Shown: positions 8,201 to 40,800 of the stretch, one piece after another
Layout of the letters: the number at the start of each line of letters is the position of its first letter
Position numbering within the stretch: position 1 is the first letter of the stretch
Origin: Phyllobates terribilis
Lineage: Eukaryota
Assembly: GCF_046119375.1 (NCBI RefSeq)
Contig: NW_027362773.1
Span: 162,130,001-162,194,000 of the forward strand
Reading direction: 5' to 3'
DNA length: 64,000 bases
Translations under genes and position numbers: made by a program
Notes under the pieces: model-generated
What the model saw: only the letters and a program-made list of their open reading frames with translations
The model's database searches: none
Told to the model about the DNA's origin: nothing

Positions 8201-9708
8201 TCTTCTTCACAGTCAGGATGGCTGCAGTCTCCTGTACAGCTGGATACATCGGAGCACCGCTCTGCATCTTCTGCTCAGTCAGGACGGCTGCAGTCTCCTG
8301 TACAGCTGGATACATCGGAGCACCGCTCTGCATCCTCTGCACAGTCAGGACGGCTGCAGTCTCCTGTACAGCTGGATACATCGGAGCACCGCTCTGCATC
8401 TTCTGCACAGTCAGGATGGCTGCAGTCTCCTGTACAGCTGGATACATCGGAGCACCTCTCTGCATCCTCTGCTCAGTCAGGACGGCTGCAGTCTCCTGTA
8501 CAGCTGGATACATCGGAGCACCGCTCTGCATCCTCTGCACAGTCAGGACGGCTGCAGTCTCCAGTACAGCTGGATACATTGGAGCACCGCTCTGCATCTT
8601 CTGCACAGTCAGGATGGCTGCAGTCTCCTGTACAGCTGGATACATCGGAGCACCGCTCTGCATCTTCTGCACAGTCTGGACGGCTGCTGTTTCCTGTACA
8701 GCTGGATACATCGGAGCACCGCTCTGCATCCTCTGCTCAGTCAGGACGGCTGCAGTCTCCTGTACAGCTGGATACATCGGAGCACCGCTCTGCATCTTCT
8801 GCACAGTCAGGACGGCTGCAGTCTCCTGTACAGCTGGATACATCGGAGCACCGCTCTGCATCCTCTGTACAGTCAGGACGGCTGCAGTCTCCTGTACAGC
8901 TGGATACATCGGAGCACCGCTCTGCATCCTCTGTACAGTCAGGACGGCTGCAGTCTCCTGTACAGCTGGATACATCGGAGCACCGCTCTGCATCCTCTGT
9001 ACAGTCAGGACGGCTGCAGTCTCCTGTACAGCTGGATACATCGGAGCACCGCTCTGCATCTTCTGCACAGTCAGGACGGCTGCAGTCTCCTGTACAGCTG
9101 GATACATCGGAGCACCGCTCTGCATCCTCTGCACAGTCAGGACGGCTGCAGTCTCCTGTACAGCTGGATACATCGGAGCACCGCTCTGCATCTTCTGCAC
9201 AGTCAGGATGGCTGCAGTCTCCTGTATAGCTGGATACACCGGAGCACCGCTCTGCATCCTCTGCACAGTCAGGACGGCTGCAGTCTCCTGTACAGCTGGA
9301 TACATCGGAGCACCGCTCTGCATCTTCTGCACAGTCAGGACAGCTGCAGTCTCCTGTACAGCTGGATACACCGGAGCACCGCTCTGCATCCTCTACACAG
9401 TCAGGACGCACTGTCTGCACTGTTTATCCCCTGCACAGTCAGGATGGCTGCAGTCTCCTGTACAGCTGGATACACCGGAGCACCGCTCTGCATCCTCTGC
9501 ACAGTCAGGACGGCTGCAGTCTCCTGTACAGCTGGATACATCGGAGCACCGCTCTGCATCTTCTGCACAGTCAGGACGGCTGCAGTCTCCTGTACAGCTG
9601 GATACACCGGAGCACCGCTCTGCATCCTCTGCACAGTCAGGACGCACTGTCTGCACTGTTTATCCCCTGCACAGTCAGGATGGCTGCAGTCTCCTGTACA
9701 GCTGGATG
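5261..9708. repeat. 66-bp tandem satellite, ~66 copies, in PTPMT1 intron 2
   Basis: Unit ctgcagtctcctgtacagctggatacatcggagcaccgctctgcatcttctgcacagtcaggacgg; produces the 22-aa periodic ORFs of 1303 and 1417 aa. Confidence 0.97.
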
Positions 9709-10103
9709 GGCCGGAGCGCTGCTGAGCAGGAGACAAATTAGTAGAGTTCACAGCACTCCAGCCTCCTTTCATCCCCTTCATTCTCAGGATCAGTTCTCCC
9801 CATTATAAAATGGCACAGCAGCTCGGACCCCCGAACACCGCTCCACTCATTCTCTCTGGAGCAGCTGGGGGCAGCACATAGAGAATGAATGCGGCGGTGC
9901 TCGAGCGCGTGCACTACCACTCATTCTACCCGGACAAGAGCCCTGCTCTGCCTGATGCTGCGGGTCCCAGTGGTCGGACCCCCATCAATCAATGACATAT
10001 CCTCTATCCTATGGATGACTTGTTTTCACCCTTTACTTTGCCCCCCATGTATTATTCTCCCATTTTCTTGTACCCCTCCATGATCGCTCTTCTTTCTTCC
10101 CAG

Positions 10104-10778: not shown

Positions 10779-10784
10779 AATAAA
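10779..10784 (+). terminator. PTPMT1: PTPMT1 polyadenylation signal AATAAA
   Basis: AATAAA 35 nt after the stop codon, followed by tgtgttt. Confidence 0.65.
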
Positions 10785-10799
10785 TGTGTTTCTGGTCCA

Positions 10800-13700
10800 C
10801 GCGTGCCGTCGCCTGTGTGTGTATTATACGCGCGCGCCGTCGCCTGTGTGTGTATTATACGCGCGCGCCGTCGCCTGTGTGTGTATTATACGCGCGCGCC
10901 GTCGCCTGTGTGTGTATTATACGCGCGCGCCGTCGCCTGTGTGTGTATTATACGCGCGCGCCGTCGCCTGTGTGTGTATTATACGCGCGCGCCGTCGCCT
11001 GTGTGTGTATTATACGCGCGCGCCGTCGCCTGTGTGTGTATTATACGCGCGCGCCGTCGCCTGTGTGTGTATTATACGCGCGCGCCGTCGCCTGTGTGTG
11101 TATTATACGCGCGCGCCGTCGCCTGTGTGTGTATTATACGCGCGTACCGTCGCCTGTGCGTGTATTATACGCGTGTGCCGTAGCCTGTGCGTGTATTATA
11201 CGCGCGCGCCGTCGCCTGTGCGTGTATTATACGTGCGCGCTGTCGCCTGTGTGTGTATTATACACGTGTGCCGTCACCCGTGCGTGTATTATACGCGTGT
11301 GCCGTTGCCTGTGTGTGTATTATACGCGCGCGCCGTTGCCTGTGCGTGTATTATACGCGCGCGCCGTCGCCTGTGCGTGTATTATACGTGCGCGCTGTCG
11401 CCTGTGCGTGTATTATACGTGCGCGCTGTCGCCTGTGTGTGTATTATACACGTGTGCCGTCACCCGTGCGTGTATTATACGCGTGTGCCGTTGCCTGTGT
11501 GTGTATTATACGCGCGCGCCGTTGCCTGTGCGTGTATTATACGTGCGCGCTGTCGCCTGTGTGTGTATTATACACGTGTGCCGTCACCCGTGCGTGTATT
11601 ATACGCGTGTGCCGTCACCTGTGTGTGTATTATACGCGCGCGCCGTTGCCTGTGCGTGTATTATACGCGCGCGCCGTCGCCTGTGCGTGTATTATACGTG
11701 CGCGCTGTCGCCTGTGTGTGTATTATACACGTGTGCCGTCACCCGTGCGTGTATTATACGCGTGTGCCGTTGCCTGTGTGTGTATTATACGCGCGCGCCG
11801 TTGCCTGTGCGTGTATTATACGCGCGCGCCGTCGCCTGTGCGTGTATTATACGTGCGCGCTGTCGCCTGTGCGTGTATTATACGTGCGCGCTGTCGCCTG
11901 TGCGTGTATTATACGTGCGCGCTGTCACCCGTGCGTGTATTATACGCGTTCGCCGTCACCCGTGCATGTATTATACGCGCGCGCCGTCGCCTGTGTGTAT
12001 TATACGCGTGTGCCGTCACCCGTGCGTGTATTATACGCGCGCGCGCGCCGTCGCCTGTGTGTATTATACGCGTGTGCCGTCACCTGTGCGTGTATTATAC
12101 GCGTGCGCCGTCACCCGTGCGTGTATTATACGCGCGCGCCGTCGCCTGTGTGTATTATACGCGCGCGCCGTCGCCTGTGTGTATTATACGCGCGTGCCGT
12201 CACCCGTGCGTGTATTATACGCGCGTGCCGTCACCCGTGCGTGTATTATACGCGCGTGCCGTCTCCCATGCGTGTATTATACGCGTGTGCCATCACCTGT
12301 GCGTGTATTATACGTGCGCGCTGTCACCCGTGCGTGTATTATACGCGTTCGCCGTCACCCGTGCATGTATTATACGCGCGCGTGCGCCGTCGCCTGTGTG
12401 TATTATACGCGTGTGCCGTCACCCGTGCGTGTATTATACGCGCGCGCGCGCCGTCGCCTGTGTGTATTATACGCGTGTGCCGTCACCTGTGCGTGTATTA
12501 TACGCGCGCGCCGTCACCCGTGCGTGTATTATACGCGTGCGCCGTCGCCCGTGCATTATACGCGTGCGCCGTCACCCGTGCGTGTATTATACGCGTGCGC
12601 CGTCACCCGTGCGTGTATTATACGCGTGCGCCGTCACCCGTGCGTGTATTATACGCGCGCGCCGTCGCCTGTGTGTATTATACGCGCGTGCCGTCACCCG
12701 TGCGTGTATTATACGCGCGTGCCGTCTCCCGTGCGTGTATTATACGCGTGTGCCGTCACCCGTGCGTGTATTATACGCGTGCGCTGTCACCCGTGCGTGT
12801 ATTATACGCGCGCGCGCCGTCGCCTGTGTGTATTATATGCGTGCGCCGTCACCCGTGCGTGTATTATACGCGTGTGCCGTCACCCGTGCGTGTATTATAC
12901 GCGCGCGCCGTCTCCCGTGCGTGTATTATACGCGTGTGCCGTCACCTGTGCGTGTATTATACGCGCGCGCCGTCACCCGTGCGTGTATTATACGCGCGCG
13001 CGCCGTCGCCTGTGTGTATTATACGCGTGCGCCGTCACCCGTGCGTGTATTATACGCGTGTGCCGTCACCCGTGCGTGTATTATACGCGCGCGCCGTCTC
13101 CCGTGCGTGTATTATACGCGTGTGCCGTCACCTGTGCGTGTATTATACGCGTGCGCCGTCGCCCGTGCATTATACGCGTGCGCCGTCACCCGTGCGTGTA
13201 TTATACGCGCGCGCCGTCTCCTGTGCGTGTATTATACGCGCGTGCCGTCACCCGAGCGTGTATTATACGCGCGCGCCGTCACCCGAGCGTGTATTATACG
13301 CGTGCGCCGTCACCCGTGCGTGTATTATACGCGCGTGCCGTCTCCCGTGCGTGTATTATACGCGTGTGCCGTCACCTGTGCGTGTATTATACGCGCGCGC
13401 CGTCACCCGTGCGTGTATTATACGCGTGCGCCGTCGCCCGTGTATTATACGCGCGCGCCGTCTCCTGTGCGTGTATTATACGCGCGTGCCGTCACCCGAG
13501 CGTGTATTATACGCGTGCGCCGTCACCTGTGCGTGTATTATACGCGTGCGCCGTCACCCGTGCGTGTATTATACGCGTGTGCCGTCACCCGTGCATGTAT
13601 TATACGCGCGCGCCGTCTCCTGTGCGTGTATTATACGCGCGTGCCGTCACCCGAGCGTGTATTATACGCGCGCGCCGTCACCCGAGCGTGTATTATACGC

Positions 13701-14490
13701 GTGCGCCGTCACCCGTGCGTGTATTATACGCGCGTGCCGTCTCCCGTGCGTGTATTATACGCGTGCGCCGTCACCTGTGCGTGTATTATACGCGTGTGCC
13801 GTCACCTGTGCGTGTATTATACGCGCGCGCCGTCACCCGTGCGTGTATTATACGCGTGCGCCGTCGCCCGTGTATTATACGCGCGCCGTCTCCTGTGCGT
13901 GTATTATACGCGCGTGCCGTCACCCGAGCGTGTATTATACGCGTGCGCCGTCGCCCGTGTATTATACGCGCGCGCCGTCTCCTGTGCGTGTATTATACGC
14001 GCGTGCCGTCACCCGTGCGTGTATTATACGCGTGCGCCGTCGCCCGTGTATTATACGCGCGCGCCGTCTCCTGTGCGTGTATTATACGCGCGTGCCGTCA
14101 CCCGTGCGTGTATTATACGCGTGCGCCGTCGCCCGTGTATTATACGCGCGCGCCGTCTCCTGTGCGTGTATTATACGCGCGTGCCGTCACCCGAGCGTGT
14201 ATTATACGCGTGCGCCGTCACCTGTGCGTGTATTATACGCGTGCGCCGTCACCCGTGCGTGTATTATACGCGCGCGCCGTCACCCGTGCGTGTATTATAC
14301 GCGTGCGCCGTCGCCCGTGTATTATACGCGTGTGCCGTCACCCGTGCGTGTATTATACGCGTGTGCCGTCACCCGAGCGTGTATTATACGCGTGCGCCGT
14401 CACCTGTGCGTGTATTATACGCGTGCGCCGTCACCCGTGCGTGTATTATACGCGTGTGCCGTCACCCGTGCGTGTATTATACGCGCGTGC
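10800..14490. repeat. CpG-rich ~27-31-bp satellite (ccgtcRcctgtgYgtgtattatacgcgYgYg), ~125 copies
   Basis: Period is 31 bp at the start (10806 to 10837); the unit is mostly alternating purine/pyrimidine. It produces the 1100-1270 aa pseudo-ORFs. Confidence 0.96.
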
Positions 14491-14984
14491 AGATCTGCAG
14501 ACCGTCCGTCCGTCCAGCTGTGATTTCTCAGTTTCCTCCTTATTCTGGGGATATTCTGTGCCACCCGTTCCTCATCCATCTCATACAAATATCTGACCCC
14601 ACAATTACCAGCTGACTGCAGGGTCCGGTGACATAGGGGGCTGAGGACATGACCTGGCCCCCGACCGCTGCCCCCAGTATTAGTGAGGGTGGTCTGCTGT
14701 CGGCTGCTGTACCGCTAGAGTGCTTTCCTACCTTCCTTCCGGGAGATACGATATTATAAGCTCAGACAATCCATCATTCTACTTAGATTTTGACCTGGGA
14801 GAAACTTATTCTGCTCATTGTGACTTATTTCCACATTTTTACTCCCTGGGCTCTTCAGTGTAAATTCAATGATTTGGACACTTGTGGAGGATAAATATTT
14901 TGCAAAAGGGTTAAAAAATGTGGAACATTTGTCTTCTGCATCCTCTATGTATAATGGTTAATCAGCATCTCTCAGGGAGCGCAA

Positions 14985-16849: not shown

Positions 16850-19178
16850 ATGACAGGTCACACCCCCCGCAGAAACCTTGCACATCTAGACACTCACACA
16901 CTCTGACTCTGTTCTACCACTGACATCCATATCCTCACTCCATGACACAGACAGCGCCACTGCTTTCTACAATGCCACTCTCGCATCAGCTATTGACTCG
17001 GTCGCCCCTCTTGTGCATGGCAGAGCGTGACGAGTCAACAGGCAACCCTGGCATAACACCCTCACTAAACAGCTTCGACAAGCGTCCAGGGTTGCGGAGC
17101 GGTGTTGGAAGAAAACACATACTCAAGAAGACTTCACTGCATTCAAACAAGCAACGCTCACATTCAAATCAGCCCTCACCTCTGCTAAACAGGCCTACTT
17201 CATAACCCTCATATCTTCCCTATCCTACAACCCCAAACAGTTATTCAACACTTATAACTCTCTCCTCCGCCCTCCACTGCCCCCTTCGACCTCCATCATC
17301 TCTGCTGAGGAGTTTGCCACACACTTCATAAACAAGATTGACCAAACACGGCAAGTCTTTACTGCCCAACCACCACAACCCCTTTGTTTTCCACAACATT
17401 TCCCTACCCCCATAACCTCCCTTCCCAACATCATGGAAAGAGACCTTACTCGTCTCCTCTCCAAATCACACCTCACCACATGTGCACTCGACACCATCCC
17501 ATCCCACCTCCTCCCCATCCTCACCCCCACACTTATCCCATCCCTAACCCATCTCTTCAACCTATCACTATCTTCTGGTACTTTCCCCGCTGCCTTCAAA
17601 CATGCCACAATCACGCCCATCCTCAAAAAGCCATCCCTCGACCCAACCGCCTTGTCCAGCTATCGCCCCATATCGCTGCTCCCATTTGCCTCCAAACTCC
17701 TTGAGCAACACGTTCACGCTGAACTTTCCTCCCACTTTTCATCTAACTCTCTCTTCGACAACCGACAATCCGGCTTCCACCGAAACTGCCCTTAGCAAAA
17801 TCACCAATGACTTACTTACAGCCAAAGCTAACAGACAATTCTCTGTACTCCTCCTTCTTGACCTGTCCTCTGCTTTCGATACTGTTGACCATTGCCTCCT
17901 ACTACAGATCCTCTGTTCCTTTGGTGTCAAAGACCTTGCCCTATCCTGGATCTCCTCATACCTTTCTAACCGCACGTTTAGCGTCTCCCACTCCCACACT
18001 ACCTCCTCGCCCCCTCTCTGTTGGAGTCCTTCAAGGCTCTGTCCTAGGACCCCTACTCTTCTCAATCTATACCCTTGGCCTGGGACAGCTCATAAAATCC
18101 CATGGCTTCCAGTACCATCTGTACGCTGATGACACCCAGATCTACCTCTCTGGCCCAGACTTCACCTCTCTGCTGTCCAGAATCCCAGCATGTCTAGCAG
18201 CCATATCCGCCTTCTTCTCCTCCCACTACCTCAAGCTCAATGTGGACAAAACTGAACTCATTATCTTTCCCCCATCTTGCATATCTTCCCCACCTGATCT
18301 TTCTATCACAATAAATGACATTACTCTTTCCCCTGTACCGTCAATCCCCTGCCTCGGAGTAACCCTTGACTCTGCCCTGTCCTTCAAACCACACATCCAA
18401 GCTCTCGCCACCTCCTGTCTCCTCCAGCTCAAAAATATTTCCAGAATCCGTCCTTTCCTCAACCCCCAATCTACTAAACTGCTTGTGCATGCCCTCATCA
18501 TCTCCCGCCTCGACTACTGCAACATCCTCCTCTGTGGCCTCCCTGCTAACACTCTCGCACCCCTCCAGTTCATCCTCAACTCTGCTGCGTGACTGGTCCA
18601 TCTCTCTCCTCGCTACTCCTCCGCTACCCCCCTTTGCAAATCCCTTCACTGGCTCCCATTCCCCCAGCGTATCCAGTTCAAACTACTAACACTGACCTAC
18701 AAAGCCGTCCATAACCTCTCTCCTCCGTACATCTCTGAACTAATCTCCCGATATATTCCCTCACGTAACCTCCGGTCCTCCCAAGACCTCCTTCTCTCCT
18801 CCACACTTATCCGTTCCTCACGCAATCGCCTCCAAGATTTCTCCCGAATATCCCCCGTCCTCTGGAATTCTGTGCCCCAACACGTCCGATTATCCACCAC
18901 ATCCGGATCCTTCAGACGGAACCTGAAAGCCCATCTCTTCAAGAAAGCCTACAGCCGGCCATGACCCCGTTGCCTCCTCAACAACACCGGAGCTGCTGCA
19001 GCCCCCCAACCTACTCTCTCCTTGCCCATCATCCTGGAGAATGTAAGCCCCCAAGGGCAGGGTCCTCTTCCCTCTGTACCAGTCTATCATTGTTAGTTTG
19101 TTTACTGTAAGTGGTATGTAACCCCTCCTTATGTACAGCGCCATGGAATCAATGGCGCTATATAAATTAATAATAATA
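16850..19178 (+). mobile_element. 5'-truncated, frameshifted L2/CR1-group LINE (reverse transcriptase region plus 3' tail)
   Basis: Split ORFs contain [46 protein letters not shown] (18122-18133) and LGVTLDS. The 3' end has the stem-loop AGCGCCAT-ggaatca-ATGGCGCT (19137-19159) and a (TAA)n tail. Confidence 0.92.
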
Positions 19179-20076
19179 TGGAGCCGTCACCCCGCTTCCA
19201 TCGCCTCCTAAGTGGCGGCACCGTTCTGATCCTACACGAGTCGCCGGTGAAGCTGGAACACAAGCGATCCCAACCCAGGAGGGGTCAGGGTGGTCTCAGG
19301 TCAGGGGGCTACTGATACTAACCAATCAGAAAACCAGTGGATATTACACTGGTGGTACCGGGTCCGATTTTTTTTTAGCCGCTGGGACAACATCTGGTTT
19401 TCACGGGATCGATAATAAACGCTAATTAGGATTTCATACATCCAAGGACCAGGTACGGGCTGGACCGCCAGTGCCCCTTAGGACAGCCAGACGTCTGACC
19501 CCACCATGACGTTTCTTCCCGAGGGTTGATGCCTTTAGATTACTAGAAGCAAAGGGTTAATTGGCAGCTGTTGTATGACCCAACCCAGAGCCGTAAGGAA
19601 ACGTTCACACCCTGATGGAAATTTTCTGCAGCCAAAATAGTCAGTAGCCGCGGCCCGTACAAAAAAAATTGTGCAGGTTTTTTGGTGCAGATTTCATTGA
19701 ATTCTAAAGGCTCAAAACGTTCCCGAAATCCGCAGCGGAGGTTTGATGGGTAGAAATGGCGCTGCCGCTCGACCACGCGGAGGATCTCTCAGGCAGCGTG
19801 CCGCTGGGATCTGGTGAAACCTCATCTATAATGATAACACTAAGGCCATGTTCACAAAAATGGTGGTCTCCAATTATTATTATAACCTATAAAGTATAGT
19901 GAACTGGAGCAGGTCTGTACAGGATCCATCCACAGATGGAGTGAGGTCCTACACACCGCCATCAAAGCGGATCACACTGGATCCCTGCCGCTCTGAGGGC
20001 TATCAACCCGTTTCCATTATAATCAATGGCTGATCAAGAAGCTTCCAGGCGGCTTGGACCTCACAACAATACGTCA

Positions 20077-20830: not shown

Positions 20831-21569
20831 ACCTTTGCACACGTTCATTAGATGCTTCAGTAAAAATACACAGAGCCTGTTTGTTCATTGCAGCTCATGT
20901 ACATGTGGATTTCTTAAAAACAGTAAAAATTCTAAGATTTCTACTTCAGCTTTTTAATTTGGATTGTGATATTTAAAAAAAAAAAAAGTAAATTTAAACA
21001 GAAAATCCGGATTTAAACAATCGTTCATTTTCTGACGCCATTTCCCATCATTGTCAGATCGGCATAAATGGCTGCTGCTAATGAGGAGACGTCACAGTTA
21101 CATCGGTATTTACAGAGGACTCAGGGGCCGGGACCCCAACGATTGCAGAAGTGATCAGCTGAGGGTGTGGTGGGCTTCGCTCTCCTACGGAAAGTCCACA
21201 CCCGCTAACCCTGAGCGCCCGAGCGGAGGGGCGCAGCGCCAGCCCAATGTTTCTGCCATCTCTTATTTTAACATCCCGACGTCCCCATTAACAGGAGCTT
21301 ATGATGCGTCACCTCAATCAATACTTAGGACTTTGGGTGGGACTTGTTTGTCCGATCTTGTCGGGATCTTCGGCCTCCAAACACAAGCAGCTAAGCAGAG
21401 ATTCAGCAGAGGCAAGAAGACGGCAGAGGACACGGGCAGGTTCACTAAAGCCACCGTTTTAGGCTGGTGGTCCCACCCTGTTTTACTAGGACCAGATTTT
21501 AATATAATTTTTCAGATCCAAAAGCAACAAATGACGTCTCCGGCTTTCCCCGAGTCGTCAGACAAAGCC

Positions 21570-22430
21570 TCATGCCAGTAAAAACTGCAGATTGGTAAGC
21601 AGAAAGCGAATGCCGCTGGTGACGGTCACCACGGAGGTGGCGGGGTTTAGCTTGAAGGTGTTGGCGTCCCCTTTCTTGTATTGATCCCGGAAGACATAAA
21701 TGCAGCCGTTGCAGCTGGCGATTTTCCAGAGCGCTGGTCGTGAGCTCCAGACCTCGGGCAGGCAGAGCCTGGTGAAGCTGTCCAGCAGCGGGTTATAGCA
21801 CACCAGCGAGTCTCCCTCCGCCACGATGAACACCAGGTCCTTGTGGACGGCCGCGTGCATTCGGCCGGCAAACGGCAGCAGGTAGGGTTTGACGTGGCAC
21901 TTCTCCGTGGTAGTGTCGAAACACTGGATGAGGCGAGAGGGTTTGGTGAAGAAGTCCAGGTCGTTCTCCTCGCCTCCCATTAGGTAGATCAGACCGTTCA
22001 GGTTCACCCCCGCCGCCCCGGAGATGGAGACCTCCAGCTGACTAGTCTCTGTCCAGACATTGTCCGCTACTCGATAGTAAATGACCACATTAGAGAGCGA
22101 GTCCTGCAGGGTCTTACCCCCCAGGGAGTAGATGGCATCCTTGCCGGGCACGGACACCAGCGTATGCTGCAGACGGTCCCGGGGAAGCGGTGCGCATCGC
22201 TCCCAGTCCATGGTCTCCATATTACATTTCCACATTCGACGAGGGATGGACCCTCCTACCACGTAGAGATCGGGGCCATGTTTGCAGGCGGCGGTGATCT
22301 GGTGGCACAGACTGTTCTGTCCGCTGACACTTATGGAGTCGTCCTGCGCACAATGGAGCGAGACGGCAATGGAGTGCGTGCGAGATTCCTCCTTCCCGAT
22401 CAGGTAGATGTGCACGTTTTCCCCGATTTC
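21570..22430 (-). CDS. KBTBD4: KBTBD4 last coding exon (kelch repeats)
   Basis: tctttaag|EIGENVHIYLIGKEESRTHSIAVSLHC...YVVGGSIPRRMWKCN...LTNLQFLLA*; 861 nt, phase 0. Confidence 0.96.
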   Translation of the reverse strand, partial: EIGENVHIYLIGKEESRTHSIAVSLHCAQDDSISVSGQNSLCHQITAACKHGPDLYVVGGSIPRRMWKCNMETMDWERCAPLPRDRLQHTLVSVPGKDAIYSLGGKTLQDSLSNVVIYYRVADNVWTETSQLEVSISGAAGVNLNGLIYLMGGEENDLDFFTKPSRLIQCFDTTTEKCHVKPYLLPFAGRMHAAVHKDLVFIVAEGDSLVCYNPLLDSFTRLCLPEVWSSRPALWKIASCNGCIYVFRDQYKKGDANTFKLNPATSVVTVTSGIRFLLTNLQFLLA

Positions 22431-22727
22431 CTTAAAGACATAATACACATGGAAACACTTGAAGGGTCATTAAAAGGGATTTACTCCAAAAAAGCAACAA
22501 GGTCCTAGCTCTTATAAGTCAGAGGATCTACAGAAAGGAGCGCCGTCCCAGAAGGAAAGAAACCTTGCAAGATTGCAAGAGCCACATATTGGATGTGAAA
22601 ATTGCCTTTTCCGAGAGGATCTGAACTCTAATGCCACTTATTGAATGAAGCGAGCCTAAAAGTCAATATCGACTCTTTAACGAGCCTCGTCACATGACTT
22701 TGGTTTTTATCCTAACCAGAATCTCTG

Positions 22728-22771
22728 TTTGAAGACTCGTGTTTCAGGGCTTTGCCCCTCCTCAGTGCAAA
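22728..22771 (-). ncRNA. Type I hammerhead ribozyme motif
   Basis: Minus strand reads tttgca-CTGAGGA-ggggc(aaa)gccct-GAAAC-acga-GTC-ttcaaa. The CUGANGA and GAAA cores, stem II (5 bp), a minimal stem III and a GUC cleavage triplet are present; stem I pairs at 5 of 6 positions. Confidence 0.75.
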
Positions 22772-23531
22772 GCAAGAGACCCGATTCGGCTGTATGAGAA
22801 GCCTCTGACTGGGGTCTAAGGGGTAATGTCTCTCCTTGGAGAGTGGTAAACTGGCGATGGTGTCAAATAAACTGTGGGTTATCATAGATAGGTGTCAGAA
22901 CATGCAGAGCATCACAGGTACTATAGAAAATTAGTCAACGCGCAGAACATCACAACTATGTTATTAAGGAGTCACAACAAGCACAGCATTGCAGCTAATA
23001 CAGAAAGGAGTAACAACACGCAGAGCATAAAGTTTTGATTATTTGGATGTGACATGTACCACCTACTAGAGAGGAGCCAATCGATTTGCAGGACCTTGAT
23101 CCAGCGGCCATGCCAGTGTTTCATGGACGCCAGACGGGAGCCCTGTGAATCGCCTCCTACCTCCCGGCATTCCCCAGTCCAGCCTGGCGCTACATCAAGC
23201 CACCACGATGACGTTGTGCCGCGCCTACAAATCCGAAGGGAAGCCGGGCATGCCGGCAGGAGGAAGTGGCTCACAGCGCTCACTTACGATGGCCACGGAT
23301 GACTAACATGGCCACTGGACTAGGGTCCTGCACCTCAACTCGCTCATCTGTACCAGCCTCCTCACCTTGTACGGTGCAACCTCTACGGCAGAGGTATTAT
23401 ACTGGCGGTGATTCTTTCAGCAGGATAATGGTCGGTTAAGAACGTGACAAGGAGATGAAGGTTATGACTTTATAACCCTTTAAAAAATAATTACCACAAA
23501 ATGCTCAGAACACGAAGATGTTTAACAAGTT

Positions 23532-23537
23532 TTTATT
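23532..23537 (-). terminator. Candidate polyA signal of the nested P2X7-C-terminal-like gene
   Basis: TTTATT on plus (AATAAA on minus), ~230 nt past the stop at 23766, in an AT-rich UTR-like stretch. Confidence 0.45.
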
Positions 23538-23765
23538 TAAAACTTTTAGTGAAAAATTACAACAAACTTCATCTAAAACAGCAAATGTACAACTCAATCA
23601 AATGAAAGCTTTGCTCCTTATACAGTGCGATAACTTTTACATTTTTTAAAACTTTTTACAAACTTTTTATACAAAACAAAACTTGGAAAAATTAGAACTT
23701 TTTTTTTCCCCATATGAAATATAAAACCGTATAACTGTGATACGCGAGATTACTTGGAGCATCAC

Positions 23766-23961
23766 TTAGAAATTCATGTCGGCCAGCGGACCTGACGCGT
23801 ACTCGGAATACCATTTGAAGGCGGTATAACCTCCGTCAGGGCTCAGGAACGTCTGCTGAATTTTACTGACTACACATGAAGGCACTGATAATCCGCGTCC
23901 CTACCCAAGAAATCCGTAGATCACGTTAGTGAATTTGCGATAGGCTGCCTCTCGAAGGTGC
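23766..23961 (-). pseudogene. Nested P2X7 C-terminal (ballast)/nanor-like pseudogene, terminal exon
   Basis: ttttctccag|(R)HLREAAYRKFTNVIYGFLG*GRGLSVPSCVVSKIQQTFLSPDGGYTAFKWYSEYASGPLADMNF*; resembles the LR..AYR...PSCV...F...DG.Y..F motif of the P2X7 C-terminus. In-frame TAG at 23901-23903. Confidence 0.85.
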
Positions 23962-24273
23962 CTGGAGAAAAGAAAAAAAAAACAAAACGATATAAGCGGG
24001 TTCATAATTCTGCTCTGGGTATGAGCAATAATTGCATCAGGTGGATCAGCAACCTGCAGCACTCCAGCTGTTGCAAAACTACAACTCCCAGTATCCTCGG
24101 GCAGCCGCAGACTTCTGCCTCATCATTTCAATCTGTTAGTCTTAACAGATTTACCCGTTCTTTTTGCACGGATTACTTTATATTGACGGAACAGCAATAT
24201 CACATTATGGGATGATTTGCTGTGGAAACGTCATAAAAATAAAACATGCAAAAAAAAAAAGAAGTAAATTTAC

Positions 24274-24615
24274 CTATTTTCTTTTTCTGCAAACTTTGAC
24301 GCTGTCAATTTGGTGGAAAACTGAAGCAGCTGAACGAGAAACTCTCTGGACAGCATGAAGCTGGCAAAGTCCAAGTGTCGCGTAACACAAGACTCGTTTT
24401 CTAGGAATCTCTTCATGGCGGGAACTTTCCGCTACGTGAGGCATGATGCTACGACGCCCGCATCGACACCAGTTTGTGTTCTGCAGCCTTCCTCCAGGAT
24501 CGGGCGTCGGGATCGGCCGTTCCTCGCCCGGTGCCCATTGTGGATCGTTCTAGACGCTCCATGGGTTACGGCGGTTTTCTTTCTCTGCACGTTCCTGGAG
24601 TCGAGCTTGGAATTT
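24274..24615 (-). pseudogene. Nested P2X7-C-terminal-like pseudogene, Cys-rich exon
   Basis: cttattag|KFQARLQERAEKENRRNPWSV*NDPQWAPGEE...RLQNTNWCRCGRRSIMPHVAES, then a frameshift to VPAMKRFLENESCVTRHLDF...AEKEN(R)|gtaaat. The phase-2 junction joins the terminal exon in frame. Confidence 0.8.
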
Positions 24616-24706
24616 CTAATAAGAAAAATGGAAAAATTGTGTTTTTTTTTTTTAAATAAAAGTATAAAATATTATAAATAAATGAAATAATTAAGTGAAG
24701 CCTCAC

Positions 24707-24784
24707 AGGGTCAGCTTCTCTGTCGGCGCGGATCCTGGCCGCATTCTCGTCTTCAGGTGGCTCTTCATATTCCTCTGACCTTTC
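24707..24784 (-). pseudogene. Nested pseudogene, acidic exon B
   Basis: gatatcag|ERSEEYEEPPEDENAARIRADREADP|gtgagg; 78 nt, phase 0-0. Confidence 0.7.
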
Positions 24785-24891
24785 CTGATATCACACAACA
24801 TAAAAAACAAAAAAAGACAAAAAACAAAACCAAGATAAAACATAAAATGCCTTTATAAACACAAGCAAACAAAAAATACAAAAACACCTAC

Positions 24892-24999
24892 TTCAACATA
24901 TTCGTCATAGTCTGATTCAGAGTACTCAATTTCTTCCTCATAAATAAACTCTTCTACATCTTCATCAACGTCTATTTTTTCTTCTTCTTCCTTATATGA
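24892..24999 (-). pseudogene. Nested pseudogene, acidic exon A
   Basis: tttttttcccctaatag|SYKEEEEKIDVDEDVEEFIYEEEIEYSESDYDEYVE|gtaggt; 108 nt, phase 0-0. Confidence 0.7.
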
Positions 25000-25122
25000 C
25001 TATTAGGGGAAAAAAAAGGTAGATATAGTTTTATTTGAAAAAAAAAATTGTTTTAGATCTATTTTCCACATAAATTATATTTTTCAAAAATAAGTGTCAG
25101 AACAGGCTGAAGTCTGAAGAAG

Positions 25123-25372
25123 CAGCTCCCAAGACCTGCGCCTCAACTGACAGAGGAGCTGAATGGTAACAGATCACTGGTGAGCGGCTGGAGACGGGAG
25201 GTGACAGGGAAAGAAATAAATCTCAGCTGACTGAGAATTTTTCTTCTTCTCCAACCTCAGTCAGCCAAGAAGACTTCTTTCTTTTCCGGTCACTGCCTGT
25301 CTCCTTTCGCTCACCAGTGTGCTCTTAACATATAGCTCCTCTATCATTTGAGGCGCAGGTCTCAGGAGCTGT
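25123..25372. mobile_element. Foldback MITE with ~100-bp imperfect inverted arms
   Basis: cagctcccaagacctgcgcctcaa...cactggtgagcg at the left is complementary to cgctcaccagtg...ttgaggcgcaggtctcaggagctg at the right. Confidence 0.65.
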
Positions 25373-25724
25373 GATTCTAAAGACTGCAGCCCGTCCTGAC
25401 ATGTGACTAGGAGTGGCTGCTATTTCAATTACATGACGGGGGACCATTTTTCCCCCCCAACCTTTGAGAACCCCCTTAAATGTCTATGGATGTGGAGTAG
25501 GAGGTCAGAATAGCTCCAGGAAGTTAATGTGGAGGAGGCACATACTTTCTCCGTTTACTGTATATATGCACAATTATTGTGCATATATACAGGGTGGGCC
25601 ACGTTTCACATGTGGTCTGTACAGGACAACGCTTATGGCCATACATGTCAAACTCTGGCGCGAGGGCCAAATCTCGCCCCCAGGGTGGTTTTATTTGGCC
25701 TACGACAATAGGAACACCACCCCT

Positions 25725-26665
25725 ATGTGGGACCCATTATAGTGTATGGCGCACTATGCGGGGGCCCATTATAGTGTATGGCGCACTATGCGGGGGCCCA
25801 TTATAGTGTATGGCGCACTATGCGGGGGCCCATTATAGTGTATAGAGGACTATGCGAGGCCATACATTATACTGTATGGCGCACTATGTGGGGCCCATTA
25901 TTCTGTATGGAGGACTATGCGGGGCCCATTATTCTGTATGGAGGACTATGTAGGGACCATTATACTGTATGGAGGACTATGTGGGGTCCATTATTCTGTA
26001 TGGAGGACTATGCGGGGCCATTATTCTGTATGGAGGACTATGCGAGGCCACACATTATACTGTATGGAGGACTATGCGAGGCCACACATTATTCTGTATG
26101 GAGGACTATGCGAGGCCACACATTATACTGTATGGAGGACTATGCGAGGCCACACATTATACTGTATGGAGGACTATGCGAGGCCACACATTATTCTGTA
26201 TGGAGGACTATGCGAGGCCACACATTATACTGTATGGAGGACTATGCGAGGCCACACATTATACTGTATGGAGGACTATGCGGGGCCCATTATTCTGTAT
26301 GGAGGACTATGTGGAGCCCATTATACTGTATGGAGGACTATGTGGGGCCCATTATTCTGTATGGAGGACTATGTGGGGCCCATTATTCTGTATGGAGGAC
26401 TATGTGGGGCCCATTATTCTGTATGGAGGACTATGTGAGGCCCATTATTCTGTACGGAGGACTATGTGGGCCCATTATACTGTATGGAGGACTATGTGGG
26501 GCCATTATACTGTATGGAGGACTATGTGGGGCCATTATTCTGTATGGAGGACTATGTGGGGCCATTATTCTGTATGGAGGACTATGTGGGGCCATTATTC
26601 TGTATGGAGGACTATGTGGGGCCCATTATACTGTATGGAGGACTATGTGGGGCCATTATTCTGTA
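25725..26665. repeat. ~27-31-bp minisatellite (gtatggaggactatgYgRggccYattatWct), ~31 copies, probably inside a hAT-like MITE
   Basis: Direct tandem units; preceded by catgtcaaactc...gagggccaaatctcgcccc, which resembles a hAT MITE left end. Confidence 0.85.
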
Positions 26666-27008
26666 TACTGGTTGGCCCACGATTTTGTCCAAGTTTTTCA
26701 TTGTGGCCCTAATAATCCCGTCTGTTGCCCATAGCAACCAAGCAGGCCTCAGCTCTCACTTTACCTCAGCAGTGTGAGGGATGCCTGCGGCCACCATTTC
26801 CTTCCTGCGGTCGGTCGTTGTTTCTCCGCGGAGGACGGCAGTGATGTGTGAGCACAACATGGCGGCTTGTGATAGTGCAGGCGACGTACACATGGGGTCA
26901 GTCACAGACACGACGGCTCTGCGGGGCAATGGCCGCTCCTTCCCGCTCCAGTAATAAGCTGAATACACGGCTTGTAGTAACACAGGATCCACAGAGAAAA
27001 AAAAAATA

Positions 27009-28180
27009 CACTATTCTCAAAAAGTTTGGGATATTTGGCTTTTGGGTGACATTTCTGGATGACCCTACAGTGTCCTTTGACCTCCATCAGGAAAACTTAA
27101 TGCGACACCGCTGGATTTCTGAATCCACACGTCCAGCCGGTCAACGTCTCAGGACGGTTTCCACAACTTGCTCTTCTCGAACGAGGAGCTTAAATGACAA
27201 AATCCACACCAGGGGTTTGATCCATGAATCGGCCAGTACATGTCGGGGCTTAATTAGAATTGGGTTCTAAACCGTCCTCCACATGGCGCTGTTCACATTC
27301 TGACATCATGAGACCAAGACGACACCTGACAATTGATCATCAGGACCGGCCATTGTGAGGCTCCAAGCAGGAGGTTCCCAGACGGAAGAGACCACCGAGC
27401 TGAGAGAGTCATCAGCGGGGTGCAACAGAGACAGAGAGAGACACAGGAAGAGGCAGAGACGTGGACGTCCTCTGCCACACCCCACAGCTCATTCAGAATC
27501 GGATGATGAAAGTCACACAACTCCGGGCACATGTAAGGGAGGCGAGAGGCACCAAGTGTCATGTCAGACCATCCAAAACAGTTTACACCAGCGTGGTCTG
27601 CGTGCCAGACGGACTGCAAGGTCCCTGAGCAATCACCGGCGTCATCTGCAAGGTCCCCGACCAATCACCAGCATCATCTGCAAGATCCTATACCACACCA
27701 CCAAGCACTGGAGTGGCGTCATCTGCAAGGTCCCCGACCAATCACCAGCATCATCTGCAAGATCCTATACCACACCACCAAGCACTGGAGTGGCGTCATC
27801 TGCAAGGTCCCCGACCAATCACCAGCATCATCTGCAAGATCCTATACCACACCACCAAGCACTGGAGTGGCGTCATCTGCAAGGTCCCCGACCAATCACC
27901 AGCATCATCTGCAAGATCCTATACCACACCACCAAGCACTGGAGTGGCGTCATCTGCAAGGTCCCCGACCAATCACCAGCATCATCTGCAAGATCCTATA
28001 CCACACCACCAAGCACTGGAGTGGCGTCATCTGCAAGGTCCCCGACCACACCAGCATGGGCCAGGGAGCATCTACGCTGGATGAGGGACCAGTGGCCTCA
28101 GTGCTGTTCACTGATGAAAGTCACAGGACGCTGCGCCACATGATAAGCTATTGAGACATTGACATTTCTTGTTGGGATAT
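27009..28180 (+). mobile_element. Degraded, truncated Tc1/mariner element with an internal 77-bp tandem amplification
   Basis: TA|cactattctcaaaaagtttggg terminus; remnant transposase (QTIQNSLHQRGLRARR, WAREHLRW, VLFTDES); 77-bp unit at 27661, 27738, 27815, 27892 and 27969. Confidence 0.8.
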
Positions 28181-28224
28181 AATTATATTATATATACATA
28201 TACATACATACATACACACACACA

Positions 28225-30668
<2,444 letters not shown>

Positions 30669-31029
30669 GCTCCGGGAAATCGACATGAAAATGATCTGAG
30701 CAGAAGAACATGGCGCCAAGTGCGGAAATCACCACAGCTGACGTCACCGAAAAGAGGAGGAAATGAAAAGAAGCGCGAGTCGGATTGTGGCTACTGGATA
30801 TGATGGCGGACACCAGGAGAACCCGATACATTACGTGATGACACGCGGCTCCGGACATACCCAGGTGTTCCTTCACCTTCCACAGGGAAGCGCCGCACCC
30901 GAGCTCCACATGAAGGAGAACCGGATTTATCACAATGGACGCCGACATCCATAGCTCCATGTCTGAACGTGTCCATGGTAGCAGCTTTCCACAGGCAATG
31001 AGACGGGTCTGCAGCTCCATGCATAAGTG

Positions 31030-31520
31030 GGCTGCGATGCTCTGCGTGTCCTGACCCCTTTCTCCCACAGCTGCGATGCTCTGCGTGTCCTGACCCCTTT
31101 CTATTACACCTGCGATGCTCTGCGTGTCCTTACCTCTGCGATGCTCTGCGTGTCCTGAGCCCTTTCTATCATAGCAGCGATGCTCTGCGTGTCCTGAGCC
31201 CTTTCTATCATAGCAGCGATGCTCTGCGTGTCCTGAGCCCTTTCTATCATAGCAGCGATGCTCTGCGTGTCCTGACCCCTTTCTATCATAGCAGCGATGC
31301 TCTGCGTGTCCTGACCCCTTTCTATCATAGCAGCGATGTTCTGGTTGTCCTGACCCCTTTCTGTCACAGCTGCGATGCTCTGCGTGTCCTGATATCTTTC
31401 TATCATAGCAGCGATGCTCTGCATGTCCTGACCCCTTTCTATCACAGCTGCGATGCTCTGCGTGTCCTGACCCCTTTCTATCATAGCAGCGATGCTCTGC
31501 GTGTCCTGACACCTGCGATG
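31030..31520. repeat. ~39-bp minisatellite next to the KBTBD4 exon donor
   Basis: gcgatgctctgcgtgtcctgacccctttctatcatagca, ~12 copies, ending ~25 nt from the donor at 31543. Confidence 0.9.
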
Positions 31521-31543
31521 ATCCTACTGCAGACTGTTCCTAC

Positions 31544-31650
31544 CTTCAGGCTGGAGACCAGCACCTCGGAGAATCCCTCCCGCTCCTCCTTATTGTAGTG
31601 GATCCAGCTCTTTATGGCGGCGGTCGGATTCTGAGAACAGGGAACGCCGT
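31544..31650 (-). CDS. KBTBD4: KBTBD4 middle coding exon (BACK domain end)
   Basis: ccatcag|(D)GVPCSQNPTAAIKSWIHYNKEEREGFSEVLVSSLK|gtagga; 107 nt, phase 1-0. Confidence 0.95.
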
Positions 31651-32439: not shown

Positions 32440-33046
32440 CTGCCAGGATGTCCGTGAGTAATCGCAGCGGCAGGTTCAGGAACTCCTCGCTATCACACAG
32501 CTGTGACAGGTGGGTTTTGGCGCAGTGTTTTGCCGCAGTGTAAAGGGAGGTGTCGCTGTGCTGATCCGCCAGCCACATGATCTGCAGACAGTTCTTCACC
32601 TGCACCGTCCGCACCAGGAAGCGGGAGCACTCCTCAAACAAGGAGGTCAGCTGGTACATGTCCGCCACCTCGTAGGTCTCCTGCAGCTCCTCCAGCCGCA
32701 GCTTCACTGTCCCGTGATAAATGTAATCCACCAGGAGCTGGAACACGCCGGCGCTAACATCCTGCAGCTGGATCACGCGGTTACGTCCCTCCTTCAGATT
32801 GGACGCGAACATGGAGCGAAAGAAGCAGCTCTGGGCCGACAGAACCAGCCGGTGCAACTGGAACTCCTTCCCCTCCACCAGGATGGTGACGTCAGCAAAC
32901 AGCTGCTCCTCCATGCAAAGCTTCATGATGCTCTGAGCCACCCGGCTGCTGTGGGAGCGATCCGTAAACGTGTACGTCACAAAGTAATTCTCCTCCGTGG
33001 TGCCGGCCAGGTTCTGAGCCGCCGCTGCGTCCTCTGAAGGGTCCAT
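32440..33046 (-). CDS. KBTBD4: KBTBD4 first coding exon (BTB/BACK)
   Basis: MDPSED...ENYFVTYTFTDRSHSSRVAQSIMKLCMEEQLFADVT...HRLVLSAQSCFFRSMF...LLTDILA G|gtgagt; acceptor ctccag at 33076/33075; total ORF 524 aa. Confidence 0.97.
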
Positions 33047-37844: not shown

Positions 37845-40800
37845 AGGTATCCGGCTGCAGCAGGAGCCTCTCCCCTTCTCTGTCTGTAATCTTTCCGGCT
37901 GCAGCAGGAGCCTCTCCCCTTCTCTATCTATAATCTTTCCGGCTGCAGCAGGAGCCTCTCCCCTTCTCTATCTATAATCTTTCCAGCTGCAGCAGGAGCC
38001 TCTCCCCTTCTCTATCTATAATCTTTCCGGCTGCAGCAGGAGCCTCTCCCCTTCTCTATCTATAATCTTTCCGGCTGCAGCAGGAGCCTCTCCCCTTCTC
38101 TATCTATAATCTTTCCGGCTGCAGCAGGAGCCTCTCCCCTTCTCTATCTATAATCTTTCCGGCTGCAGCAGGAGCCTCTCCCCTTCTCTATCTACAATCT
38201 TTCCGGCTGCAGCAGGAGCCTCTCCCCTTCTCTATCTATAATCTTTCCAGCTGCAGCAGGAGCCTCTCCCCTTCTCTATCTATAATCTTTCCGGCTGCAG
38301 CAGGAGCCTCTCCCCTTCTCTATCTATAATCTTTCCGGCTGCAGCAGGGGCCTCTCCCCTTCTCTATCTATAATCTTTCCGGCTGCAGCAGGAGCCTCTC
38401 CCCTTCTCTATCTATAATCTTTCCGGCTGCAGCAGGAGCCTCTCCCCTTCTCTATCTATAATCTTTCCGGCTGCAGCAGGAGCCTCTCCCCTACTCTGTC
38501 TATAATCTTTCCGGCTTCAGCAGGAGCCTCTCCCCTTCTCTGTAATCTTTCCGGCTGCAGCAGGAGCCTCTCCCCTACTCTGTCTATAATCTTTCCGGCT
38601 GCAGCAGGAGCCTCTCCCCTTCTCTGTAATCTTTCCGGCTGCAGCAGGAGCCTCTCCCCTTCTCTGTAATCTTTCCGGCTGCAGCAGGAGCCTCTCCCCT
38701 ACTCTGTAATCTTTCTGGCTGCAGCAGGAGCCTCTCCCCTACTCTGTAATCTTTCTGGCTGCAGCAGGAGCCTCTCCCGTACTCTGTAATCTTTCTGGCT
38801 GCAGCAGGAGCCTCTCCCCTTCTCTGTAATCTTTCCTTCTGCAGCAGGAGCCTCTCCCCTACTCTGTAATCTTTCCGGCTGCAGCAGGAGCCTCTCCCCT
38901 TCTCTGTAATCTTTCCTTCTGCAGCAGGAGCCTCTCTCCTACTCTGTAATCTTTCCGGCTGCAGCAGGAGCCTCTCCCCTACTCTGTAATCTTTCCGGCT
39001 GCAGCAGGAGCCTCTCCCCTTCTCTGTAATCTTTCCGGCTGCAGCAGGAGCCTCTCCCCTACTCTGTAATCTTTCCGGCTGCAGCAGGAGCCTCTCCCCT
39101 TCTCTGTAATCTTTCCGGCTGCAGCAGGAGCCTCTCCCCTTCTCTGTAATCTTTCCGGCTGCAGCAGGAGCCTCTCCCCTTCTCTGTAATCTTTCCGGCT
39201 GCAGCAGGAGCCTCTCTCCTACTCTGTAATCTTTCCGGCTGCAGCAGGAGCCTCTCCCCTTCTCTATCTGTAATCTTTCCGGCTGCAGCAGGAGCCTCTC
39301 CCCTTCTCTATCTATAATCTTTCCGGCTGCAGCAGGAGCCTCTCCCCTTCTTTGTAATCTTTCCGGCTTCAGCAGGAGCCTCTCCCCTTCTCTGTAATCT
39401 TTCCGGCTGCAGCAGGAGCCTCTCCCCTACTCTGTCTATAATCTTTCCGGCTGCAGCAGGAGCCTCTCCCCTTCTCTGTAATCTTTCCGGCTGCAGCAGG
39501 AGCCTTTCCCCTTCTCTGTCTATAATCTTTCCGGCTGCAGCAGGAGCCTCTCCCCTTCTCTGTAATCTTTCTGGCTGCAGCAGGAGCCTCTCCTCTACTC
39601 TGTAATCTTTCTGGCTGCAGCAGGAGCCTCTCCTCTACTCTGTAATCTTTCTGGCTGCAGCAGGAGCCTCTCCCGTACTCTGTAATCTTTCTGGCTGCAG
39701 CAGGAGCCTCTCCCCTACTCTGTAATCTTTCTGGCTGCAGCAGGAGCCTCTCCCCTACTCTGTAATCTTTCTGGCTGCAGCAGGAGCCTCTCCCGTACTC
39801 TGTAATCTTTCTGGCTGCAGCAGGAGCCTCTCCTCTACTCTGTAATCTTTCTGGCTGCAGCAGGAGCCTCTCCTCTACTCTGTAATCTTTCTGGCTGCAG
39901 CAGGAGCCTCTCCCCTTCTCTGTAATCTTTCTGGCTGCAGCAGGAGCCTCTCCCCTACTCTGTAATCTTTCTGGCTGCAGCAGGAGCCTCTCCCGTACTC
40001 TGTAATCTTTCTGGCTGCAGCAGGAGCCTCTCCCCTTCTCTGTAATCTTTCCTTCTGCAGCAGGAGCCTCTCCCCTACTCTGTAATCTTTCCGGCTGCAG
40101 CAGGAGCCTCTCCCCTTCTCTGTAATCTTTCCTTCTGCAGCAGGAGCCTCTCCCCTACTCTGTAATCTTTCCGGCTGCAGCAGGAGCCTCTCCCCTACTC
40201 TGTAATCTTTCCGGCTGCAGCAGGATCCTCTCCCCTTCTCTGTAATCTTTCCGGCTGCAGCAGGAGCCTCTCCCCTTCTCTGTAATCTTTCCGGCTGCAG
40301 CAGGAGCCTCTCCCCTACTCTGTAATCTTTCCGGCTGCAGCAGGAGCCTCTCCCCTTCTCTGTAATCTTTCCGGCTGCAGCAGGAGCCTCTCCCCTTCTC
40401 TGTAATCTTTCCGGCTGCAGCAGGAGCCTCTCCCCTTCTCTGTAATCTTTCCGGCTGCAGCAGGAGCCTCTCCCCTTCTCTGTAATCTTTCCGGCTGCAG
40501 CAGGAGCCTCTCCCCTTCTCTGTAATCTTTCCGGCTTCAGCAGGAGCCTCTCCCCTTCTCTGTAATCTTTCCGGCTGCAGCAGGAGCCTCTCCCCTACTC
40601 TGTAATCTTTCCGGCTGCAGCAGGAGCCTCTCCCCTTCTCTGTAATCTTTCCGGCTGCAGCAGGAGCCTCTCCCCTTCTCTGTAATCTTTCCGGCTGCAG
40701 CAGGAGCCTCTCCCCTTCTCTGTAATCTTTCCGGCTGCAGCAGGAGCCTCTCTCCTACTCTGTAATCTTTCCGGCTGCAGCAGGAGCCTCTCCCCTTCTC

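Follow-up and report, generated by a model that had tools for sequence, protein, structure and literature searches.

We analysed a window of 64,000 nucleotides from the dendrobatid frog Phyllobates terribilis (NCBI RefSeq assembly GCF_046119375.1, contig NW_027362773.1, forward-strand positions 162,130,001 to 162,194,000). Within the 9.1-kb last intron (22434-31543) of the minus-strand gene KBTBD4, this window carries four exons in sense orientation, referred to as the cassette in the following, which code for a counterpart of the cytoplasmic ballast domain of P2X7. The locus is probably an old domesticated KolX cassette, by now decayed, which served as an alternative 3' end of KBTBD4.

Kojima and Bao (2022, PMC9587614) showed that KolX proteins from Kol0 Kolobok elements adopt the ballast fold, that P2X7 originated when KolX was captured, and that nanor probably represents a domesticated KolX. 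The relation of KolX, ballast and nanor, to which a preliminary description of this stretch had pointed, is thus published; since the origin of the P2X7 ballast is published too, the clue to it that the description saw in the locus offers nothing new in that form. The novelty lies in a second capture of KolX/ballast, with another gene as host.

Up to now, one ancient event has been the sole basis for inferring that P2X7 originated by KolX capture. In frogs, the ballast domain is caught earlier, as an alternative 3' cassette beside the parental Kelch isoform, and its host, a CUL3 substrate adaptor, has a known biochemistry. With intact, dead and transposon-borne versions within one frog clade, capture by splicing becomes directly observable. 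The interest lies in the KBTBD4-ballast family that is revealed rather than in the window's own copy, which is an ordinary unitary pseudogene.

Structure, transcription and decay of the cassette

Exon translations were read from the minus strand of the window, and positions are given in window numbering. The cassette and the coding exons of its host are composed as follows.

24892..24999, minus strand: cassette exon 1; 36 codons, acidic, phase 0-0, without ATG
24707..24784, minus strand: cassette exon 2; 26 codons, acidic, phase 0-0
24274..24615, minus strand: cassette exon 3; N-terminal two thirds of the ballast (zinc-cysteine) domain, ending in phase 2 (AG/G)
23766..23961, minus strand: cassette exon 4; C-terminal third of the ballast domain, holding the second stop
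24891-24785 (107 nt), 24706-24616 (91 nt) and 24273-23962 (312 nt), minus strand: cassette introns; GT..AG, phases 0, 0, 2
23533..23765, minus strand: cassette 3' untranslated region; AATAAA at 23538-23533, RNA depth zero below about 23510
32441..33046, minus strand: KBTBD4 coding exon with start codon, BTB and start of BACK (Pfam BTB 2.4e-27, BACK 2.1e-10)
31544..31650, minus strand: KBTBD4 exon 3; 107 nt, ending ...CTGAAG/gtagga in phase 0
21573..22433, minus strand: KBTBD4 last exon with the Kelch repeats (Pfam Kelch_6 6.8e-19)

The product of the start exon is 97.5% identical to residues 1-202 of Ranitomeya KBTBD4. From KBTBD4 exon 3, which ends in phase 0, the reading frame continues into either of the first two cassette exons (each phase 0-0) as well as into the Kelch exon, so that the annotated fusion forms described below preserve the frame whether or not they include exon 1. 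The peptide of exon 3 (24615-24274) runs KFQARLQERAEKENRRNPWSV, TAG, NDPQW...NTNWCRCGRRSIMPHVAES and, after a shift of frame, VPAMKRFLENESCVTRHLDF...AEKEN, so that the first stop and the frameshift are both located here. Exon 4 (23961-23766) reads (R)HLREAAYRKFTNVIYGFLG, TAG, GRGLSVPSCVVSKIQQTFLSPDGGYTAFKWY...MNF up to the natural stop TAA at 23766-23768.

Exon 1 is not a first exon of a gene. It is preceded by an AG acceptor that looks used (...cccctaatag), with an in-frame TAA and TAG directly upstream, and cassette exons 1-3 of the window contain no in-frame ATG before the first lesion. The preliminary description had placed four minus-strand exons with GT-AG introns of 107, 91 and 312 nt and phases 0, 0 and 2 inside KBTBD4, quoted peptides from them and read them as one gene. 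Position, structure and peptides were all reproduced, the location being specified to sense orientation in the last intron; as a correction, exon 1 is not the first exon.

Intact frog proteins compared to the window by tblastn match the cassette exons and nothing else (E 1e-32, 2e-22 and 1e-19), which rules out a chance open reading frame. A processed retrocopy is likewise ruled out by the three GT-AG introns at ancestral positions, two of which are used in RNA.

Transcription was followed on Logan contigs of four public runs (three studies, two organism labels) aligned to 21500-25500. Runs X2 and X5 contain the joint 23960>24273, which skips 312 nt (CT..AC on the plus strand) and equals intron 3; run X2 in addition contains the joint 24615>24707, which skips the 91 nt of intron 2. 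Record 6 of run X1 spans exactly exon 2 (24707-24784). At the 3' end, contigs extend to 23613-23637 and depth falls to 0 in the bin 23376-23509, consistent with the poly(A) signal. Contigs of the Kelch exon end at 22433 and reach a depth of 24-52, as against 2-6 for the cassette, roughly a tenth. Transcription of the cassette, with splicing of introns 2 and 3, persists at a low level. As for the junction reads proposed as a check in the preliminary description, the RNA contigs use both introns exactly.

Three disabling lesions interrupt the frame.

24550..24552, minus strand: lesion 1; TAG in place of a Gln found in most orthologues (..WCFQNDP..)
24424..24431, minus strand: lesion 2; frameshifting deletion, five residues VCCRE and one base absent (3n+1)
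23901..23903, minus strand: lesion 3; TAG within the conserved GFLG.G motif

Lesion 1 is spanned without mismatch by RNA contigs X2 record 15 and X5 record 20, and lesion 2 by X7 record 31, which covers 24290-24476 with neither gap nor mismatch; lesion 3 is unchanged in X2 records 12 and 13, X1 record 4 and X7 record 28. Because mismatch- and gap-free contigs, including one from a run with the second organism label, run across all three, the lesions are real rather than assembly slips, and assembly error is ruled out. Pseudogenisation, both TAG codons, a frameshifting deletion near 24426 that removes the CC motif and a probable Cys-to-Arg change had been called from the letters of the window. 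Two stops and the frameshift are indeed present, also in RNA, the deletion shows against the VCCRE of the orthologues, and the substitution shows in the alignment (WC.CG.C in orthologues, WCRCGRR in the window).

Decay was scored against 11 intact frog proteins, the intact ones being treated leave-one-out. The window breaks 8 of 25 invariant frog columns, each intact protein 0-5; two invariant residues ahead of lesion 1 are altered (C to S and F to V). All 11 intact proteins keep the seven zinc-coordinating cysteines that are conserved in the family (PMC9587614), of which four remain in the window (WC,.C, C.T, PSC). The lost ones are that of G.C, now Arg, and the CC pair, two zinc-ligand cysteines deleted by lesion 2. 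A fourth cysteine, conserved in frogs, is gone as well, and Gln is found where Arg 578 (R578) of human P2X7 aligns. With four of seven zinc cysteines left, the window copy is a dead member of its family.

This death was probably preceded by long constraint. Between the window and Eleutherodactylus coqui, the ratio of nonsynonymous to synonymous substitution rates (dN/dS) is about 0.35 at a dS of about 1.1, which is near saturation and to that extent weakens the estimate; the end branch of the window on the tree (0.11) is no longer than the branches of intact orthologues. Together, both values argue for purifying selection across the lineage as a whole, which would have ended on the window's own branch fairly recently.

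The domain itself is best identified by its intact relatives, as the short broken pieces of the window are too weak. Taken alone, they yield no ballast match above threshold: in Pfam searches with separate pieces, only the last 44 amino acids match P2RX7_C (E 0.0035, 17.7 bits, below the cut-off of 23.5), and a phmmer search of the pieces against the PDB returned no P2X7 chain. An exhaustive phmmer search with the 52-residue middle piece led to P0001, a protein of 264 amino acids from Anomaloglossus, at 77% identity (E 1.4e-16). P0001 matches Pfam P2RX7_C (PF20478) with 87 bits (E 2e-24) and is 60-86% identical to the window over three tblastn segments. A profile of four frog orthologues, searched against the PDB, finds the solved P2X7 structures 9e3m_A (E 1.7e-12) and 6u9v_A (9e-12), with residues 472-595 covered; the alignment to human P2X7 at 1.7e-12 extends over residues 472-592. 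At the level of sequence profiles, the ballast identity is established for the family, and for the window by close orthology; the P2X7 ballast-like domain lacking a channel domain, as first described, is in good agreement with the match at 1.7e-12. The frog profile shares with the P2X7 ballast (PF20478; PDB 6u9v, 9e3m) the motifs WC.CG.C, CC, C.T and PSC and the segment LR..AYR. Unlike P2X7, the frog cassette has no channel domain, and its host partner is a BTB-BACK adaptor in place of the P2X4-like channel; the window copy furthermore deviates by the three missing cysteines and the Gln at the R578 position.

Annotated KBTBD4 fusions in frogs and the probable Kolobok origin

KBTBD4 isoforms that combine BTB, BACK and P2RX7_C are present at NCBI for Ranitomeya variabilis, Engystomops pustulosus (two forms), Hyla sarda, Rhinoderma darwinii, Bufo bufo and E. 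coqui. The Ranitomeya gene model has 478 amino acids and stops before the Kelch exon; a BTB-BACK-ballast model of 479 amino acids from Dendropsophus adds a seventh species. In Ranitomeya and in isoform X3 of Engystomops, cassette exon 2 is joined straight to KBTBD4 exon 3. Isoforms X2/X3 of R. variabilis, Engystomops, B. bufo, Rhinoderma and E. coqui resemble the window in host gene, orientation and the four exons, the KBTBD4 fusion isoforms of the nearest species being 60-76% identical to it at the protein level; unlike them, the window copy has two stops, one frameshift and four conserved cysteines gone.

The position is conserved as well. In E. coqui DNA (L005), the four cassette exons map to 16931-19183, between KBTBD4 exon 3 and the Kelch exon as in the window, and a counterpart of exon 1 has its AG acceptor at the same site. 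Between both introns, cassette exons 3 and 4 alone are conserved as DNA, with 70.5% identity over 173 nt and 79.8% over 119 nt, respectively. In Ranitomeya and Anomaloglossus, the cassette is likewise placed between KBTBD4 exon 3 and the Kelch exon, and the Anomaloglossus P0001 gene is nested on the same strand inside a BTB-Kelch gene. The location in the last intron was checked on DNA in E. coqui and taken from gene-model spans in Ranitomeya. On the tree, the window groups with Ranitomeya (support 89/84), then with Anomaloglossus (100/99). Eleutherodactylus and the dendrobatids probably last shared an ancestor about 60-70 million years ago, close to the root of Hyloidea. No paper combining KBTBD4 with the ballast was found in the literature searched, in which the fusion family thus appears to be undescribed.

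The nearest relatives outside KBTBD4 point to the source of the cassette. Ballast genes of Engystomops (L001:36078-40579) and Dendropsophus (L002:39727-46095) have four exons and are arranged tail-to-tail with a gene for a THAP protein of about 931 amino acids; the THAP proteins of the two frogs share 54% identity. Atlas relatives of this protein contain PF20700 alone or with RNase_T or YqaJ, which are the architectures described for KolobokD and KolobokE (PMC9587614). Cassette and THAP-linked KolX-like genes share 48-54% identity, all three intron positions and phases, and the exon 1 acceptor, where the exon boundaries of the THAP-linked genes were read by eye. Descent of the cassette from KolX, and with it a Kolobok origin, is supported by this relationship.

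The locus itself differs from KolX elements, to which it was compared through these THAP-linked genes and with which it shares the domain: it lacks transposase, termini and TTAA duplication, and it is fixed and orthologous across frog families. With the L001 THAP protein as query, tblastn detected no transposase trace in the 64-kb window (best E 3.3) and nothing at the KBTBD4 loci of E. coqui or Dendropsophus. The search for inverted termini or TTAA ends flanking the cassette gave none, but A/T-rich chance pairs and a hairpin at 25123-25371. The sequence TTAAAGGGG, the terminus of a miniature inverted-repeat transposable element (MITE) of L002, occurs three times in the window as against 0.26 expected, in no case flanking the cassette. 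At L001 and L002, the long inverted repeats belong to flanking MITEs or satellites rather than to Kolobok termini. The L002 unit is bracketed by two MITE copies with the ends CCCCT/TTAA and TTAA/AGGGG.

Two further systems invite comparison. Nanor and nanor-b of zebrafish (Rump et al. 2020, PMC7016195) are, by description, like the cassette in that a short protein consists of an N-terminal region followed by a zinc-cysteine domain; unlike it, nanor lies outside conserved synteny, and fish and frog proteins group apart in that account. Transposons that supply splice acceptors drive host capture through alternative splicing (Cosby et al., bioRxiv 10.1101/2020.05.07.082677), and the shared exon 1 acceptor fits this model. 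With the KRABINER-type host-transposase fusions of Cosby et al., the cassette has in common the intronic insertion, a transposon acceptor before the coding part and the retained parental isoform. In contrast to KRABINER, what was captured is an accessory protein instead of a transposase or its DNA-binding domain, and the host contributes the BTB-BACK module of a CUL3 adaptor where KRABINER-type fusions have KRAB or SCAN.

A plausible course of events is the following. A Kolobok element, or its KolX gene, would have inserted into the last intron of KBTBD4 near the base of the hyloid frogs, bringing along its own introns and a 3' splice site before its first coding exon. KBTBD4 exon 3, in phase 0, could then splice to cassette exon 1 or 2 in place of the Kelch exon, yielding a BTB-BACK-acidic linker-ballast protein for which the cassette supplies both stop codon and poly(A) signal. 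Such a protein would presumably be a CUL3 adaptor in which a zinc- and nucleotide-binding ballast replaces the Kelch propeller. After long domestication, the ballast frame would have died in the lineage of P. terribilis, where cassette RNA ends near the AATAAA. In a fused transcript, the reading frame would now terminate at 24550-24552; with the last junction 276 nt further on, such a transcript is by the usual rule a predicted target of nonsense-mediated decay.

Alternative readings of the locus

The preliminary description spoke of a stand-alone gene. Its statement that there is no channel domain holds, while the stand-alone character is doubtful, as the domain is an alternative C-terminus of KBTBD4 in the NCBI models of six hyloid species. 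In a full version of this reading, which we regard as unlikely, a nested gene with its own promoter and 5' exon made a free nanor-like protein and is now dead, the fusions being chained by annotation or arising as a by-product. Several observations fit it and correspondingly weigh against a KBTBD4 fusion. The Anomaloglossus cassette is annotated as a separate gene, with a protein of 264 amino acids and its own Met, and the fusion isoforms at NCBI are computed models. THAP-linked KolX gene models, too, begin at far-upstream exons. In P. terribilis, none of the contigs of the four runs within 21500-25500 joins KBTBD4 exon 3 to the cassette, intron 1 is seen in contigs as retained throughout, and X1 record 8 continues unspliced from exon 1 up to 25166. 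The alignment of X5 record 22 (239 nt) ends at 25001, the exon 1 acceptor, its other 182 nt lying outside 21500-25500; an upstream exon thus exists. In the same run, the main KBTBD4 contig continues without a break from the exons upstream to the Kelch exon, and given k-mer assembly, the 182 nt more likely stem from a separate 5' exon than from KBTBD4 exons.

A free protein is nevertheless hard to reconcile with exons 1-3, which offer no in-frame ATG ahead of the first stop, and with the TAA and TAG directly upstream of exon 1. Fusions are modelled by NCBI in six species, with Dendropsophus as a seventh model, and in two splice forms that both respect phase, exons 1 and 2 each being phase 0-0 and in frame with KBTBD4 exon 3. 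On account of these isoforms, the cassette looks more like an alternative 3' cassette than like a stand-alone gene, and we infer that it was spliced to KBTBD4 in this species as well.

The preliminary description also suspected the relic of an autonomous Kolobok partner gene, reported neither transposase nor clear termini at the locus, and proposed searches for transposase-linked relatives and in orthologous KBTBD4 introns. Our tblastn and inverted-repeat searches agree with the reported absence, linked relatives were found in two frogs (L001, L002), and the cassette is present in the E. coqui intron and inside KBTBD4 in Ranitomeya and Anomaloglossus. Of the suspected relic, the Kolobok origin is supported; a fossil of an autonomous element at this site is not, in view of the shared position, the dN/dS and the lack of a transposase remnant. 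That a Kolobok landed in this intron in this lineage and has simply eroded without any use by the host can therefore be considered highly improbable, even though the domain is KolX-like, its nearest relatives outside KBTBD4 adjoin THAP transposases, and the intron is filled with repeats, among them a Tc1 remnant at 28531-29163 and high-copy segments. Position and exon layout are those of E. coqui, 11 frog proteins retain an open frame and every cysteine, the dN/dS against E. coqui is about 0.35, the coding exons are the sole conserved DNA of the intron, and neither a transposase trace in the 64 kb nor credible inverted termini around the cassette were detected. A recent transposon relic is ruled out, as the position is orthologous in E. 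coqui and KBTBD4 of Ranitomeya and of Anomaloglossus also contains the cassette. Orthologous position, dN/dS and the absence of transposase remnant and termini nearby rather speak for a cassette that was long kept, domesticated and is recently dead.

That a ballast protein is still made, the lesions being assembly errors, polymorphic or bypassed, is exceedingly unlikely. The cassette is transcribed and correctly spliced, and its end branch (0.11) does not exceed those of intact orthologues. Yet contigs of four runs from three studies, under two organism labels, carry each lesion unchanged, the three disabling lesions are independent, and four conserved cysteines as well as the Arg aligned with human P2X7 R578 are lost.

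A possible second capture in hylids and neighbouring repeats

Dendropsophus ebraccatus departs from the arrangement described so far. Its KBTBD4 (L004, 10001-15421) has a last intron of 1.8 kb without the cassette, and the ballast exon of the 479-residue model (L004:24410-24802) is found within PTPMT1 in antisense orientation, at a distance of 9 kb downstream of the Kelch exon. Hylid KBTBD4-linked copies cluster with hylid THAP-linked KolX (90/94). A single clade uniting every KBTBD4-linked copy is rejected by the approximately unbiased test, at p 0.0065 for 13 rows and at p 0.001 for 17 rows, where the group was named after BLAST identities had been seen and the alignment has 188 columns. The tree left out P0007, P0021 and P0016-P0018 as duplicates or distant, and the position evidence for hylids is that of Dendropsophus. 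The downstream exon and the tree suggest a second, independent capture of KolX by KBTBD4: most hyloids appear to carry the last-intron cassette, and hylids a different downstream KolX copy that groups with hylid transposon-borne KolX.

A more far-reaching proposal is that KBTBD4 of hyloids became the second host, after P2X7, to capture KolX/ballast, did so twice, and gained a transposon-derived target module for a CUL3 adaptor, with a dendrobatid as natural knockout. We offer it tentatively and, taken as a whole, with more doubt than confidence. If true, the BTB-BACK-ballast protein might be aimed at Kolobok proteins or their partners, and P. terribilis would be a natural knockout of the BTB-BACK-ballast isoform. 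Natural contrasts for ballast binding are given by the intact Ranitomeya copy versus the dead one of the window, and by the intronic versus the hylid downstream cassette. P0014, a protein of 451 amino acids from Logan contigs, combines a KRAB domain (PF01352) with P2RX7_C; it would be a third kind of host partner for ballast/KolX, besides P2X and BTB-BACK.

The KBTBD4 intron and its surroundings contain further repeats. The Tc1-type transposase remnant at 28531-29163 on the plus strand (HTH_Tnp_Tc3_2, E 2e-22) is followed just downstream by a Tc1-like stretch at 29336-29506 (plus strand). Downstream of KBTBD4, a reverse-transcriptase fragment lies at 17807-18589 on the plus strand. A transcribed, very high-copy repeat at 22572-22839, likewise in the intron, reaches contig depths of up to 1449-1629, shows internal joints (22697>22751 and 22672>22753) and overlaps a hammerhead ribozyme call of the preliminary description at 22715-22782. 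Within cassette intron 3, a high-copy repeat fragment (24046-24179, depth 136-421) has the core GTTGTAGTTTTGCAACAGCTGGAG, which occurs once in the window and is near-identical in the Dendropsophus L002 hairpin (38571-38662); this repeat is thus common to several frog families. Just upstream of cassette exon 1, the hairpin repeat 25123-25371 consists of 101-nt arms with 80% complementarity and a 47-nt loop, has an RNA depth of 54-75 and is entered by one contig from exon 1. Very long open frames at 237-2881, 5478-9741, 10784-14615 and 44818-46893, with several overlapping frames on both strands, show a pattern typical of satellite or tandem-repeat arrays, not of genes.

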